The position numbers and the translations under genes are program-made. From Cyanophora paradoxa CCMP329 (taxonomy: Eukaryota > Plantae > Glaucophyta): DNA of 64,000 bases. Positions 46,092 to 62,069 of the stretch are shown in pieces; within the stretch, counting starts at the first letter, position 1, and each line of letters starts with the position of its first letter. The stretch is from contig QPMI01000615.1 in NCBI GenBank assembly GCA_004431415.1, positions 62,001-126,000 of the forward strand, read 5' to 3'. Below the pieces are notes generated by a model. It searched no databases. It saw nothing but the letters and a program-made list of their open reading frames with translations, and had not been told where the DNA came from.

Positions 46092-46483
46092 ATGCGGCTA
46101 AGCCAAGTGCATGTGTGGATCGTAGGGGCGTCCAGCGGCTTGGGCGAAGAGGTCCGTTGCGGCCGGCGACCGTCGGACACCGAGCGCGAGCGGCATCAAA
46201 CGCACGCGCGCGTCCGAGCGCTTAACCCCGTCGCGCAGCTAGCGCGATTATTGCACAAGCGCGGCTGCACTCTCAGTCTAAGTGTGCCGATTGCCGCCGA
46301 GCCGCCGCGCGGCGCCGGCGCCGACTAAGTGTCCGGCGCTAATCGCAGGTGCGCGGCGCGGTGATCTTTTGGAGGCGCTTTCTAAAGAGCTGCAATCGTC
46401 CAGCCAGAGCTCGCAACCAGTGCGAGTCTTCCCGCTCGACGTTGGCGACGCGGAGCGAGTCTTCGCCACTGCAGAGCGAGTGC

Positions 46484-46523
<40 letters not shown>

Positions 46524-47534
46524 CCCCTGCGCTGCGGCACTCGTCACCTCTCGTATCTCTTCTGATCGCGCACAGGTCCGCAGCGAAGGCGGAGGTGCGT
46601 CCTCGCATCGCCGACCGGTTGCTCTCGCGCAACGCTGAGAACAAGCGCGCGCCCGGCTGCATGCTGGCGCGCGCCGCGGCGCCCGCAGCGATCGACGTGC
46701 TGATCGTGGCGGCGGGCATCAACCAGCGGGGCCTCGCGACGGCCGATGTGGACGCGGCGCTTGCCGAGCGCGTCGTGAGGACGAACCTGCTGGGGGCCAT
46801 CTTCGCCGCGCAGGCCGTCCTCAAGCCGATGCTGGCGGCGGGGCGGGGCGCCATCGTGGGCATCTCGTCGCTGGCCGGCTACCGCGCCCTGCCCGGGGCC
46901 TCGGTGTACGGCGCCTCCAAGAGCGCCCTCTCCTACTTCCTCGAGACGCTCGCCATCGAGTGCCGCGGCACCGGCGTCCTCGTCTCCGACGTCTGCCCCG
47001 TGCGCCCCCGGCGATGGCCGGGCCGGGCGCTGACGACGGGCCGGCCCCGAGGCGGCCCCCGCCTCCTCTCCATTCCATGCTGCCCGAACTGCCGCCCACT
47101 GACTGCCCCGCAGGGCTTCTTCGAGAGCCCAGCGACGAAGGACCTCGGAAACGTAAAGGCTCGCCCCGCCCCCTCTCTCGTCTAGGGTCAAGCCGCCGCA
47201 CGCTCTGACCGGCGCGCACTGCGGCAGCCGATGGAGATGGCGGCGGAGCAGGTGAAACTCATGAGAGTCGTTGTCGTGTGCTGATGCAAACCCCCACGCA
47301 GGCGGCGCAGGAGGTCATCTCTGCCATCGAGGCCCGCAAGGAGCACCACGGCGCGCCCGGCCCCGGGCGCCATCCCAGGCCTAGATGTGGAGGTGACGGA
47401 GGGGGCCCGGGGCCGCAGGCTTCCCCTGGCTCTTCGAGGCGGTCATCATGCGCGCGCAGCGCTGGCTCCCACGCTTCCTCTACAACCCCGTCATCGCCAG
47501 GCTCGCCGTCCCTCTGCCAAAAGCACCGGCCTGA
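46092..47534 (+). CDS. Short-chain dehydrogenase/reductase (SDR)
   Basis: WIVGASSGLG Rossmann motif, IDVLIVAAGI, TNLLG, ISSLAG and catalytic YGASK. Confidence 0.9.
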
Positions 47535-47618
47535 TGCATACGCGCTCAACAAGCGGTCTGGTCTATCGGCGTCTGTCTGTCGCTGCGCTGGGAAAGGGCT
47601 GGCGGGGCTTGGGCCTAG

Positions 47619-50600
47619 CTACGCACTCTGCCCCTCGCCGACGGGGGCAGCAGCCTTGGCCGCGGCGGGGGCGGAGGGCGGGGACTTGCGGGCGGGTGGC
47701 GCCGAGCCGGCGGGGCGGAAGGGGCGCGGCTTCTTCGCAGCGGCTGCCGGCACGGGGGCCGCCGCAGCGGCGGTGCCGGGGGTCACGAGGGGCACGAGCC
47801 CTCGGGCCTGCCCATCTGCAGCCGGCGCGTCCGACGCAGCCGCGGGGCCGCAGCGCCCGCCGCCGCCACCGCGCTGCCCTTGTTGCGGTTGCGGGGCGGG
47901 CGGGGCGGGAGCGGGCCGGTGGCCGCGGGTGCGGCCGCCGCTGGGCGGGGGCGGGGGCGGGGGCGGGGGCGGGGCGGGAGCAGCCGCGGGGGCCGGGGCC
48001 GGGGCCGAGGCGGGGCGGCCGGAGCTGAAGCCTCCTCTGAAGCCTCCGCGGGCGAAGGCGCCGCGGCCGCCGCGGGCGCCGCCGCGGGGAGGGTAGCCCG
48101 GCGGGGCGCCGATAGCGCCGCCGCGGCCCGTGGAGCGGAACATGACGCCGCCGCGGGCGCCGTGGGTCATCGCGGAGAGGCGCCGGTTCTGGGGCAAGGC
48201 GTGGGCGGGGGGGAGGGGGCGGGGCGGAGGGTGCAGGGGCACCAGCTCGTTGCGCTCTTCGATCTCCTTCTCGAGGGCGGGGAGGAAGTCGAGCTGCTGC
48301 TCGATGAGCATGCGGCAGCCCTCCGCCGCCTGCGGCCCCCGCGCGTCAGCCCGAGGGCAGAGCGGGGCGGGGCGGGCGGGGCGGCGGCGCGCACGTCGAC
48401 GGGCCCGACGATGTGGACGATGGAGGAGTCCGGGTGCGCGCTGGCGAGCTCCTCGTCGGCCGTCGGCATCGCCTCTGCGCGGCCCGAGGGAGGCGTGGGC
48501 GGGAGGGGGCCCCGGGCGCGGGAGGACGGGGGGGGGGCACCGGCGCCGTGGTCGGAGGCGTCGTCGTCGAAGTCCGCCTCCTCCTCGTCGGCCCCCGCCC
48601 GGCGCCGCCCGGCGTCCCCCGCCACCCCGCCCCGCCCCCGCCCCCGCCCGCGGGCCCCGCCCCGCCCGCCCCGCGCCGCGCCGCCGGCCCTGCTCCGCGA
48701 ATCCACGAAGTCGATGCGGTAGACGCCGCCTGCGCTCCCGGGTCGGACCAGTCTCCGAGGCGCGGGGCGAGCGAGCGGGCGGGGGCGGGGCGGGGAGCGC
48801 GGGCGCACTCTTCTCCTTGATGGACTGGATGTTGGCGCCCTTGGCGCCGACGATGCGGCCGACGAGGCTCGAGGGGACGGCGAAGCGGATGCGGACGACC
48901 TCGAGGAGGCGGCGGGCCTGCTGCACGGCCTCCTCGCTCGCCCCCGTCACGTACACGGACCCGTCGTCCTCGATGTCGATCCGCTCCACGCCCGCCACCG
49001 CCTGCGCCTTCCGCAGGTTCGCGCCCCGCGCCCCGATCGTGGTCCCGATCAGGTCCCGCTCCACCTTCCCCCGCGTGAGTGGCGGCCAGGGGCGAAGAGG
49101 CGGCAAGGGGGCGAGACGAGGGCGGAGCACCGTGAAGCAGAGGTGGACCTTGCCGTCGACGGCGGCGGCGGCGGCGTGCGCGGGGGCGACGGCCGCAATG
49201 CTGGCGGCGGCGGCGCGCACGTTCTTCCGCTCCAGCTCCGCCGCCAGCTTCTCCGCCAGCGCGCTCTTCTCCTTCGAGATCACGTACGCACTGCGCGGCC
49301 GCGAGGGCGCAGCGTGGGCGCGTGCGGCAGCAGGCGAGATGCGGCAAGGCCGGCGGAGAGCGCACGTGTGCTTCTGCCGCACGTACGAGTCCGCCTGCGC
49401 GAGGGGCGCTGAGCGGCGGTGGCCGCCGTGGGGCGCGCCGGCCGGCCGGCGGGGGAGGGCGCACGAGGAGGCGGCAGCGCTCGACGGCACGCTCGGCGCC
49501 GACGACGCAAAGCTTGAGGCGCGGCTGCCCCTGCGCCTGCTTCTTCCCGCCCTGCGCCTGCTCCGACTCCACCCAGACGCGCCTGCGCGGCGAGTCGGCG
49601 GGGGCGGCGGCCGCCGGCCCCGCGCAGCGCGGCGCACATGACGCCGGTGCGCTCGCCGAGCTCCGCGTCGACGTCCGTGCTCCAGACGCTGTGCGCCGGC
49701 GCCCGGTCGGGGAGGCCACCGGCGCGGGCGCGCGGCGGGCCGCACGTCTCGATGCCGTTGACGACGGATATGCGGCAGCCAATGGCGCTCAGGAACGCCT
49801 CCGCATACTGGCGCTCGATCGGGAACTCGGCGCGGACGAGCCGCGGCATGGAAACGACGGCCGTCCCGCGGTAGCTCGGGCGGACCGCGTCCAGCTCCAC
49901 GATCTGCGAAGCGCCCTCGGCGAAAACGTACGCGTACGCGCGACGCGCGCTCGCGCTCTCTCGCCGCCCACGCGAACCTCCTCGAACGAGTCCTCCCCTT
50001 CCCCGAGGTACCTGCGCTTGTGTTCGCACAGCCGTGAAGGCAATGGCGAGCTGGACCACGGACCGGATGACGGCGAAGGAGCCCTTCATGCTGACGACCG
50101 TCGCCTCCCCTGCAATGAACGATCGGACGTGCGGCGGAATGCTGGAGAGGCATGGGCGTACAGTAGCTGAAAGGCTCGTCGTGGTTGATCCGTGTTCGCA
50201 CCTGCACACAGCCGTTTGCCTGGCGCTTGAACGAACTACCGAAGCACGCTACGCACCTCCACAGGCGTTCCCGGCTGCGGGACGAACCCGACGGCCTCGG
50301 GCGGAACGCGCCTGACGCGTTCCAGAGGAGCGTACTCGATGTGCGAGCTCGAAAGCGGGCCAGTCGGGCCGTGAGCCTGCAGCGGGTTCAGCCATTCGAG
50401 GCTTCACGGACGACGTACACTGGCATGGCGACGAACCTGGCCCGCGACGTCTTCGTGGTGGCTCGCAGGGAATCCCTCAAAAAAGACCTGGACGGCGCCA
50501 TCTGACGCCCGCACGTCGAGGACGCGGGCCAAGTAGAAGCCCTGCGAAGTGTGAGCGAAGCTTGGTTGGGTCCGTCGTAAATCAAGCAACACACGTTCCG

Positions 50601-50645
50601 CGACACTTCCTTGACCTCGACCAGGCCGCGAGTGGCGCCCGCCAT
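47619..50645 (-). CDS. FMRP/FXR-like RNA-binding protein: tandem Agenet/Tudor, KH1, KH2 and RGG box
   Basis: LVEVKEVSRN|GFYLARVLDV, VQVRTRINHDEPFSY..ATVVSMKGSFAVI..IVELDAVRP, VERDLIGTTIGARGANLRKAQAVAGV..ARRLLE, VPSSLVGRIVGAKGANIQSIKEKS and RGGARGGRGAFARGGFRGG. Confidence 0.85.
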
Positions 50646-50836
50646 CCTCCTCTGCTGTCACTGTGTTGAGAGCTTGGGGGTACAACGTGCAACTGCTACC
50701 ACAAAAAGCGCGGACCCACACCGGCATCAAACGCCGTCAGCAGGCCCGGTGGTTTGAACTCGCCTGAAGAGCACGTCCGAAGTATCTGGCATTGAACTAG
50801 CAATCGTGCAGCCGGCAAAGTGACCCGCGCGCCAGC

Positions 50837-51870
50837 ATGGGCGGAGGCTCGTCTGGTGCGCAAGGCCTCCTGCATAATACACCCGAAGCAGCATAATAGT
50901 GCCGCGGGATGCCGCGCCCGCGCTATTTATGCTGCTTCGGGTGTATCGACGGCTGGTGAGGGCGGCCTCTTCTCCAATTGACTGCTCTCTCAGGCCTGCG
51001 CGTGTTTCCATGCTTCGGCGCGCCCCCGGTAGATCCACAAGGGCCATCACCGGCGCGGCGAAATGATCCGGAGTCGCGGCGGAAAGAGGAAGCGCGGGCT
51101 GGTCCATCTAGCAACCTCGCCCAGCAGTCTCCAGCCGCCCAGGGCAGCGGGCGCCGCGGGCGCGTTAGCCCGGGTCTCGACCCGCCCGATCCCAACAAGG
51201 CCGACACCGAGCACGAGTCGAAGATTCAGAGCAAACCCCTCTCTAGAAAACCTTCTTTCGAGTCCGGAATGCTCGCTGTAGAGCCCCTGACTCCCGCACC
51301 GCGGTCCCGGTACGCGTCCCCATGCTGCACCCGGCCTGTTCGGAGTCCAACGCCGCCTCCCGCAGGGAGGGATCCTTTGCGACGACGCATGCCCCCAACA
51401 TTCACGCAGCGCAACGCCAAAAGCTAGAGGCCGCGCGCGAGCTGGCGGCCCAGGCAGTTGCGGATCGGAAGGACAGCTCCCGAGAACGACCCGGCGCCAA
51501 CGCGGGCCCCAGCGCGCCTCCCCCCGCGGACGAGGAACGGGAGGAGGCTGCCGATGCGGGTGGCAACACCGAGCGGGATCTATTCATGAAGAAGATCGAC
51601 GAGCGTTTCGAGAGGTGGCTTCGCAAGGATGCTCTGGAGTGCATCTACGAGGCTAGGGTGCGCCCTGTCTCCTGCGAAGCAGTATCTTCCTTTGCAGTCC
51701 TCTTTATGGGCTCCTTTTCGCGCCGGCCTCCCTGCCCTCTAACAAGTGCCGGCAGGGCCAGATCATCCCACCGTGGGAGGAGGCGGATGCCGGCGCTTCG
51801 CTCGCCAGAAGCCCGTCGCGCAAAAGCATACAAGCTGGTAGCAGCTCGCAGCGCGGCGGGGGCGGGCTAG
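50837..51870 (+). CDS. Hypothetical protein, possibly N-acylated (MGGGSS-GLRVFPCFG)
   Basis: ATG 50837 exon can splice into ORF 50978-51427, then ORF 51322-51870; the 3' end is uncertain. Confidence 0.35.
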
Positions 51871-61492: not shown

Positions 61493-62069
61493 TTGTGCGG
61501 GGGCTTCTGCGCTGCTCGGTCGGTCGAACGATCTAGCAAGAGCGGCGAGGAACTATGAGCAACCGAGCTGCGAGGGCGCACAGTTCTAGAACTCGGGGAG
61601 CGGAGCGAGAAGGAGCCTCGGAAAAAAAACCACAAGGAGCCGAAGACGGAGTGTAAGGAGCCGAAGAAGGAGTGCTAGTACTACGGTACGGATTCCAGCT
61701 ATATATATATGTATATATACCAGTATATATAGGCCTCGCGGCCCTCGCTGATGATCATGATCACTGAGCTCGATCGCGAGTCAGTTAATGCCTGAAGGCT
61801 GAAGCTCGTTAATGCCTCGTGGTTATATTAATTTGGGGGGTGAAGCTCGTTAATAACGACTGTCCGTCATATTGACTGGGGTCGTTAATATGCCATGATG
61901 ACTCGTTATAACGCGTTATAACCTAGTAACGCGTACGTGCTGTCGTTACTAAAAGTTACAACGGTCACGTTATAACGACAACACTGCCGCCGGCGTCCTA
62001 GCGAGGCTAGCGGCGCCTAGCGCTAGTATGAACATGTTCTAGCTATAGCTTTGTATACGTACCTGGTAG

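Follow-up and report, generated by a model that had tools for sequence, protein, structure and literature searches.

A divergent FMRP/FXR-family gene in the glaucophyte alga Cyanophora paradoxa and the probable pre-animal origin of the family

The locus and its transcript

The 64,000-nucleotide stretch of DNA analysed here (the window; positions 62,001 to 126,000 of the forward strand of contig QPMI01000615.1, assembly GCA_004431415.1) comes from the glaucophyte alga Cyanophora paradoxa CCMP329, and carries on its minus strand, at 50645..47619, a gene for a homologue of the fragile X-related (FXR) RNA-binding proteins, represented in humans by FMRP (the FMR1 product), FXR1 and FXR2. FMRP, one of the human disease proteins that have been studied most, is usually portrayed as an innovation of animals, largely neuronal in character. 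The coding sequence consists of 16 exons and 15 GT..AG introns of 52-79 nt. The start codon ATG is located at 50645 and the stop codon at 47619, the ATG is preceded, five codons upstream, by a stop in the same frame, and the joined exons form an open frame of 2094 nt, stop codon included, which encodes 697 amino acids. The interval 47619-50645, described in a preliminary description of this DNA as a full-architecture FMRP/FXR homologue in an apparently non-animal eukaryote, corresponds exactly to the stop and start of this coding sequence. The host is indeed not an animal, and the 697-residue model is identical to the database protein P0001 (EukProt), whose identifier, tig00021357_g20769.t1, has the form of Cyanophora paradoxa gene models such as tig00000269_g23772.t1 (PMC12449267). 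Cyanophora contigs likewise bear tig000... names in bioRxiv 10.1101/674762, and an expression atlas of Cyanophora places gene models on tig00000361, tig00020554, tig00020918 and others.

The splicing of the gene, for which confirmation from RNA had been proposed, is directly visible in assembled sequencing contigs. Contigs of three RNA-like runs (X1, X2 and X4, from two studies) and of one DNA-like run (X15) were aligned to positions 47400-50900 of the window (3,501 letters); the type of each run is a guess, the RNA status being argued from the GT..AG-spliced contigs. In the RNA-like runs 14 of the 15 introns are removed, each of the 14 splice joints being present in all three runs and every one of them (14/14) resolving to GT..AG on the minus strand, whereas X15 displays none of these joints (0/14) and covers 49647-50900 without interruption. 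The remaining intron, intron 15 (48189-48242), is located in a repeat region and its joint is unlisted in the contigs; it was placed by sequence, from an exon start seen in the contigs and the sole GT that fits.

Read in the direction of transcription, the gene begins with exon 1 (50595..50645; residues 1-17, MAGATRGLVEVKEVSRN), whose joint, 50540/50594 in X1, X2 and X4, was set to GT..AG. Exons 2 (50437..50541; residues 18-52), 3 (50257..50376; residues 53-92), 4 (50162..50201), 5 (50064..50109), 6 (49978..50011), 7 (49746..49903), 8 (49638..49688), 9 (49465..49582), 10 (49366..49394) and 11 (49131..49290), together with exon 13 (48541..48729), which encodes the RG-rich and acidic part of the KH2 loop, and exon 14 (48395..48474), are all delimited by RNA-contig joints, GT..AG borders and the open frame. 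Exon 12 (48809..49064), likewise bounded by RNA-contig joints, encodes KH1 and the first half of KH2 and is recognised by Pfam KH_1 on its own (E 9.9e-15). Exon 15 (48243..48329) is seen in RNA contigs, its 3′ end being derived from the only fitting GT, and exon 16 (47619..48188), which encodes the RGG box and the Pro/Ala-rich tail and ends with the stop codon, is covered by the contig pieces 48020-48188 and 47418-47933, separated by a repeat gap (47934-48019) that holds no GT. The introns are uniform in style, with GTGCG or GTGCC at the 5′ end of 11 of the 15 and GCGCAG or GCCGCAG at the 3′ end of ten. Both the structure of the gene and its splicing are demonstrated by these alignments.

Transcriptome sets such as MMETSP are known to contain cross-contamination, and on that ground the gene might be regarded as an animal or otherwise foreign sequence in the algal assembly, or as a misassembly. 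This explanation is extremely improbable, as the gene is embedded in the 64-kb contig beside other G+C-rich genes, and the stretch is present in 20 runs from at least seven studies, with one organism label throughout. Furthermore, the DNA-like run is contiguous over the intron-bearing part while the RNA-like runs are spliced, and the identity to animal proteins is only about 27%. Seven RNA-like runs contain about half of the words of the stretch, as expected for a spliced transcript.

Domain architecture of the protein

Human FMRP, FXR1 and FXR2 have a common order of domains, namely tandem Agenet/Tudor repeats, KH0, KH1, KH2 with a long variable loop, a helical segment and an RGG box. The same order is found in the Cyanophora protein, in which KH0 is a predicted domain; all domains are given here with minus-strand coordinates. 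The first Agenet/Tudor repeat (residues 7-76; 50305..50627, introns included in the span) is supported by the alignment, by the strands of a structure model (8-13, 18-27, 34-38, 65-68 and 73-75) and by the match to the FMRP structure 4ova, and contains a disordered insert of 20 residues at residues 45-62. The second repeat (residues 88-142; 49874..50271), with W106, Y122 and F130 at the cage positions, is matched by Pfam Agenet (E 1.3e-6, 29.3 bits against a cut-off of 27), by the FXR1 Tudor chain 3kuf and by the residue map. A KH0-like domain with its own insert (residues 152-232; 49492..49846) is predicted by the structure model through its match to 4ova and 4qvz, and a long helix (residues 233-296; 49155..49491; helix 232-296 of the model) links it to KH1. 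KH1 (residues 298-360; 48897..49151), with the GxxG loop GARG, is supported by Pfam and by PDB sequence and fold matches. The first half of KH2 (residues 361-397; 48707..48896), with the loop GAKG and with I383 aligned to FMRP I304, is supported by Pfam, PDB sequence matches and the residue map. Pfam KH_1 matches the protein twice (E 8.4e-19), the two loops reading IGARGAN and VGAKGAN. When single exons are scanned with Pfam only KH_1 is recovered, because the Agenet exons are too short.

The variable loop of KH2 (residues 398-470; 48422..48706) is defined by the family alignment and the model, in which it is disordered and of low predicted local distance difference test score (pLDDT). It is an insert of 73 residues that separates the strands SGVYRIDF and IVHIVG and is RG-rich at its start and then acidic (ADEEEADFDDDASD). 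KH2 continues beyond it with its last strand and helix (IVHIVGPVDAAEGCRMLIEQQLDFL), the helix being extended as a long one (residues 471-512; 48177..48421; strand 177-185 and helix 186-219 of the modelled piece 293-512). As this segment aligns with FMR1 and with all other family members, the insert occupies the position of the FMRP variable loop. The RGG box (residues 520-566; 48015..48155), with six RGG between residues 520 and 561, and the low-complexity tail rich in Pro and Ala (residues 567-697; 47622..48014) are read from the sequence. The tandem Agenet-like repeats, the pair of KH domains with their GxxG loops, the acidic insertion in KH2 and the C-terminal RGG box of the preliminary description are therefore all recovered.

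With regard to the tail, the contigs of X1 and X4, but not those of X2, have one additional G in a GGGG run at 47843 relative to the window. In the mRNA it would put the last ~75 codons of this tail out of frame and produce an Arg/Cys-rich end, and could represent a strain difference or a homopolymer assembly error.

Homology to FMRP and the FXR proteins

In a search of PDB sequences, FMR1, FXR1 and FXR2 account for all of the nine best matches, which are distributed across both halves of the protein. The KH1-KH2 chain of FMRP (2qnd) is matched over residues 298-397 with E 3.1e-17 and the KH1 chain of FXR1 with E 5e-9, while the tandem Tudor chains of FXR1 (3kuf, E 3e-8) and FXR2 (E 4e-8) are matched over residues 24-145 and the N-terminal domain of FMRP with E about 8e-5. 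The best match outside the family is PNPase (E 0.0024), and over KH1-KH2 the score is 65.6 bits for FMRP versus 19.7 bits for the next KH protein. The E-values of the FXR matches are far beyond chance. Consistent with this, BLASTP against a mammal-type FMR1 (P0028) yields a single alignment of residues 24-395 to 5-316 (377 columns, 27% identity, E 1e-25) that takes in the two Agenet repeats, the KH0 region and KH1 as well as the first half of KH2. All the named proteins that were looked up among the matches of a HMMER scan are FXR-like or contain the FXR-type KH pair. The similarity searches thus lead to members of the family, and not to the unrelated KH proteins that the preliminary description had named as a refuting outcome. 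A word search with the KH exon as query recovered only the window's own protein, and one with a 27-row profile was dominated by generic KH proteins.

Several residues of FMRP are retained at the aligned positions, W80 as W106, Y96 as Y122, G266 as G345 and I304 as I383, with S129 and F130 at the positions of T102 and Y103. We take T102/Y103 and the aromatics at the W80 and Y96 positions to be the methyl-lysine site, and G266E and I304N to be patient mutations.

The same relationship emerges from the structure models. An AlphaFold2 model of residues 1-300, built from a 50-row family alignment, has a pLDDT of 85 and a predicted template-modelling score of 0.77, and its ten best Foldseek matches in PDB are all N-terminal structures of FMRP or FXR proteins. 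The best of them is 4ova, whose entry is described as "two tandem Tudor domains and a new identified KH0 domain", with E 2e-12; for 4ova and 4qvz the target-normalised template-modelling score (TM) is 0.76-0.78 over about 250 columns comprising the Tudor pair and KH0. The superposition on the N-terminal domain of FMRP that had been suggested as a check is accordingly favourable at the level of the model. Plant tandem Agenet structures appear at Foldseek ranks 11-35, with E 1.6e-5 and worse and over the Agenet part only; the chromatin readers AGDP1/ADCP1 and AGDP3 have the tandem Agenet fold in common with the algal protein, but contain neither KH0 nor KH1-KH2 nor RGG, and are relatives of one domain only. 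The model of residues 293-512 (pLDDT 86) is best matched by 2qnd (TM 0.80-0.82), the next tandem-KH structure being PCBP2 (TM 0.37). In the ESM Atlas only FXR clusters stand at the top of the matches, both by features and by shape, and a second Atlas search added no further taxa. As both models were built from alignments containing animal FXR proteins, their support is not independent of that from sequence, a point most relevant to KH0, which the sequence models do not detect.

Since Agenet, KH and RGG modules are each widespread, plants are rich in Agenet proteins, as the Foldseek ranks illustrate, and the FXR-specific Pfam models are silent on the protein, it could be argued that unrelated modules were assembled independently into an FMRP look-alike. 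Such convergence is highly improbable. One continuous colinear alignment extends over Agenet1-Agenet2-KH0-KH1-KH2, every domain matches its FXR version best and by a wide margin, the packing of KH1 against KH2 is specific to FMRP (TM 0.8 versus 0.37), and the KH2 loop is inserted at the same place as in FMRP. Kinship with the FXR family is secure along the structured part of the protein, and these comparisons establish the order of its domains and the homology of each to its FMRP counterpart, KH0 being predicted by the model. The full-architecture homologue of the preliminary description therefore stands, with colinear domains and with FXR proteins as the best matches in both sequence and fold.

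The algal protein nonetheless differs from its human counterparts in several respects. It is only about 27% identical to them, lacks FXMRP1_C_core, FXR_C1 and FXMR_C2, carries the inserts in the first Agenet repeat (20 residues) and in KH0, and has a KH2 loop that is itself RG-rich and then acidic as well as a tail rich in Pro and Ala. By contrast, the GxxG loops and the equivalents of W80, Y96, Y103, G266 and I304 of human FMRP are kept.

Range of the family

A full HMMER scan with residues 1-510 as query recovered 495 relatives at E<=1e-3, of which 142 are at E<=1e-10. Many of these matches bear the animal N-terminal signature. A second large set, derived from metagenomes, Logan assemblies and EukProt/MMETSP, is characterised by the signature W-K-x-[DE]-E-W. 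Named relatives outside animals are those of the choanoflagellate Salpingoeca helianthica (P0136) and of the cercozoans Mataza sp. D1 (P0045) and Chlorarachnion reptans (P0072); land plants and fungi are missing from the HMMER matches that could be named. One of the environmental relatives, P0010, matches vertebrate FMR1 with E 1e-25 over the N-terminus alone and has precomputed Pfam Tudor_FRX1, Agenet and KH_1 domains; a word search with its N-terminus returned only animal FMR1 and one close relative. No genomic locus is on record for P0001, P0053 or P0022, and P0012 is a transcript contig.

The protist and environmental FXR-like proteins (among them P0004, P0005, P0010, P0014, Mataza P0045 and Chlorarachnion P0072) and the Salpingoeca protein have, like the alga with its predicted KH0, an Agenet-Agenet-KH0-KH1-KH2 core and no metazoan C-terminal core. 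Their N-terminal scores to the algal protein (37-46 bits) are mostly above those of animal proteins (about 19-34 bits), and P0010 has RG repeats in the KH2 loop, as in the alga. On the other hand, most of them have W-K-x-[DE]-E-W in the first Agenet repeat, where the alga has an insert instead, several reach Pfam Tudor_FRX1 and KH_9, which the alga does not, and one is encoded by an intronless gene, unlike the 15-intron gene of the alga. Among 35 aligned members KH_1 is found in 35, Agenet in 27, Tudor_FRX1 in 19, KH_9 in 17 and FXMRP1_C_core (PF12235) in seven, which are taken as animal-clade proteins. Because only these 7/35 possess it, FXMRP1_C_core is read as an animal addition that does not define the wider family.

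Some of the matches merit separate mention. The two best HMMER matches are the mirid-bug proteins P0002 and P0003 (from Lygus hesperus and Apolygus lucorum), which contain repeated FXR-type KH1-KH2 pairs and have no Agenet match; one of them is 1189 residues long and is encoded on a 56-Mb contig, and the two have the look of a KH-pair expansion specific to insects. At L001:2001-3875, on the 14.8-kb contig CDRMYP010000517.1 of GCA_977009605.1, an intronless gene beside an NAD(P) transhydrogenase gene encodes the FXR-like protein P0172; this protein belongs to the 90%-identity cluster of P0055, itself grouped with Chlorarachnion reptans. In addition, an Atlas cluster automatically named "Fmr1-b protein" includes perkinsid members and is treated as a lead only.

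Phylogeny and evolutionary origin

The literature describes the family as metazoan, in agreement with the preliminary description. In a survey of 88 taxa, among them six Archaeplastida and 14 SAR, FMRP was found to be lineage-specific to Metazoa and to appear around Salpingoeca rosetta and Nematostella (PMC8868631). A literature search on non-animal FMRP returned no report of the FXR family outside animals, most subscription journals being beyond its reach.

A tree of 50 rows and 334 columns was calculated under LG+C20 with posterior mean site frequencies (PMSF); ten fragmentary or very long rows were excluded (P0110, P0082, P0070, P0044, P0047, P0121, P0071, P0048, P0027 and P0015). The animal clade is recovered with support of 100/98 and the choanoflagellate pair is its sister (97/88). 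Outside this clade lie the alga, a chlorarachniophyte clade (100/100) and other lineages, the deep branches being weak (69/92). The tree argues against a recent animal origin of the algal gene or contamination, and does not fix the position of the alga, as grouping it with the animal core is not rejected by the approximately unbiased (AU) test (difference in log-likelihood 3.3, p 0.107). The phylogeny that had been suggested as a check therefore places the alga outside the animal-choanoflagellate clade without excluding the alternative grouping.

Given this unfixed position, an old gene transfer is possible, by which Cyanophora would have acquired a true FXR gene from a holozoan or another protist. 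The patchy known range of the family, with no land plant or fungus among the nameable matches, would fit such an event, as would the AU result and the weak deep branches. Transfer is nevertheless unlikely. The gene contains 15 short introns in a single style, 11 of them starting with GTGCG or GTGCC, and its G+C content of 73-78% fits the other G+C-rich parts of the window in a within-window comparison; no relative exceeds about 32% identity to it; and in the best tree the alga lies outside the animal-plus-choanoflagellate clade. Moreover, there are several independent non-holozoan clades, which a single recent transfer would not explain.

A family in which choanoflagellates occupy the expected place as sister to animals, and in which several clades outside the holozoans branch deeply, is most simply read as having originated before animals. 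The FMRP/FXR family is probably much older than animals, and it most likely predates them, was lost in many lineages and gained its C-terminal core domain later, in animals. The pre-metazoan origin put forward in the preliminary description hence remains the best reading, in view of the choanoflagellate, the two cercozoans and the many lineages outside the animal clade, although the place of the alga within that history is unsettled by the AU test. A more far-reaching proposal, to which we would give an even chance, is that the family arose before the major eukaryotic groups split and survives in glaucophytes, Rhizaria, choanoflagellates and probably perkinsids, its ancestral role being a general control of messenger ribonucleoprotein particles (mRNPs) and translation in single cells, long before there were neurons.

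Base composition and neighbouring sequence

The G+C content of the region (73-78%) is within the range of the other G+C-rich parts of the window, and as a result stop-free frames are plentiful on both strands. A frame of 862 codons at 47619-50207, on the minus strand and in the frame of exon 12, runs through introns and wrong-frame exons and was rejected as an artefact of composition (77% G+C). It illustrates why lists of open reading frames mislead in the Cyanophora paradoxa genome. Also set aside were odd joints of RNA contigs in 47847-49613 (47871->49588, CG..CG with extra letters; 48919->49160; 48795->48272), which have no GT..AG and look like assembly chimeras in G+C-rich, low-complexity stretches.

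It had been suggested that the RGG box might be related to G-quadruplexes in G/C-rich introns. The introns do not bear this out, as the 15 of them are C-rich on the RNA strand (425 C versus 293 G) and contain no sense-strand G-quadruplex motif. The only two such motifs of the pre-mRNA are located at 48616-48672 (minus strand), in the coding sequence of the RG-rich KH2 loop, and may simply follow from GGN and CGG codons in a G+C-rich genome. In human FMR1 mRNA, the part that codes for the RGG box is said to contain a G-quartet. The four 3′-most introns, 12-15 (48189-48808), contain C-tracts on the RNA strand (e.g. GTGCCCCCCCCCCGTCC), which places G-quadruplex motifs on the template strand of the DNA; the introns nearer the 5′ end differ in this respect.

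Downstream of the FXR-family gene, a short-chain dehydrogenase gene (46349-47185, plus strand; Pfam adh_short, E 1.9e-23) is arranged convergently, with its end close to the 3′ end of the former. One RNA contig of 1144 nt extends 623 nt past 47418, towards this gene.

Interpretation and significance

The best explanation of the locus, and one that we consider quite likely to be right, is an expressed nuclear gene of Cyanophora paradoxa for a divergent but complete FMR1/FXR RNA-binding protein, with a function like that of its family and a family history that began before animals. A number of observations weigh against it. Pfam Tudor_FRX1, KH_9 and FXMRP1_C_core do not match the protein even at E 1, nor does KH_9 match residues 130-305 at that threshold, so that of the profiles that had been proposed as a check Agenet and KH_1 match and Tudor_FRX1 does not. 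FMRP R138 is aligned with an alanine (A166). KH0 is derived from a model built on an alignment with animal FXR proteins and is not independent of it, and the RNA nature of the runs is a guess for which the GT..AG-spliced contigs argue. The branch of the alga is very long (2.08) and its composition deviant (47% A+G+P+R), the AU test does not reject its union with the animal core, and the functional roles are all drawn from the family.

By analogy with the family, KH1 and KH2, with their intact GxxG loops, would bind single-stranded RNA, and the RGG box and the second RG-rich stretch in the KH2 loop could provide extra binding to structured or G-rich RNA. The two RG-rich segments may also serve as sites for arginine methylation and self-association. 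The tandem Agenet repeats, with W106, Y122 and F130 at what we take to be the cage positions, might dock on methylated partner proteins, and the long helices after KH0 and KH2 may allow dimerisation. The whole protein would act as a cytoplasmic, mRNP- or ribosome-associated regulator of translation. RNA binding, partner docking and, likely, mRNP or translation regulation are thus the functions predicted for the Cyanophora FXR protein.

Databases already carry automatic labels such as "Fmr1-b protein", so the novelty is one of recognition and range rather than of kind. A complete expressed homologue in a glaucophyte, together with the cercozoan and choanoflagellate relatives, would move the origin of the family well before animals. 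An ancient core, composed of the Agenet pair, KH0, KH1, KH2 with its loop and RGG, could then be told apart from what animals added, the C-terminal core domain being an example. The alga retains the residues aligned with G266 and I304, which offers conserved positions for the reading of disease mutations. The finding opens the question of what an FMRP-type protein does in a cell without synapses and, if the family is indeed pre-animal, Cyanophora would offer a single-celled setting for the study of the core function that the fragile X proteins had before animals.

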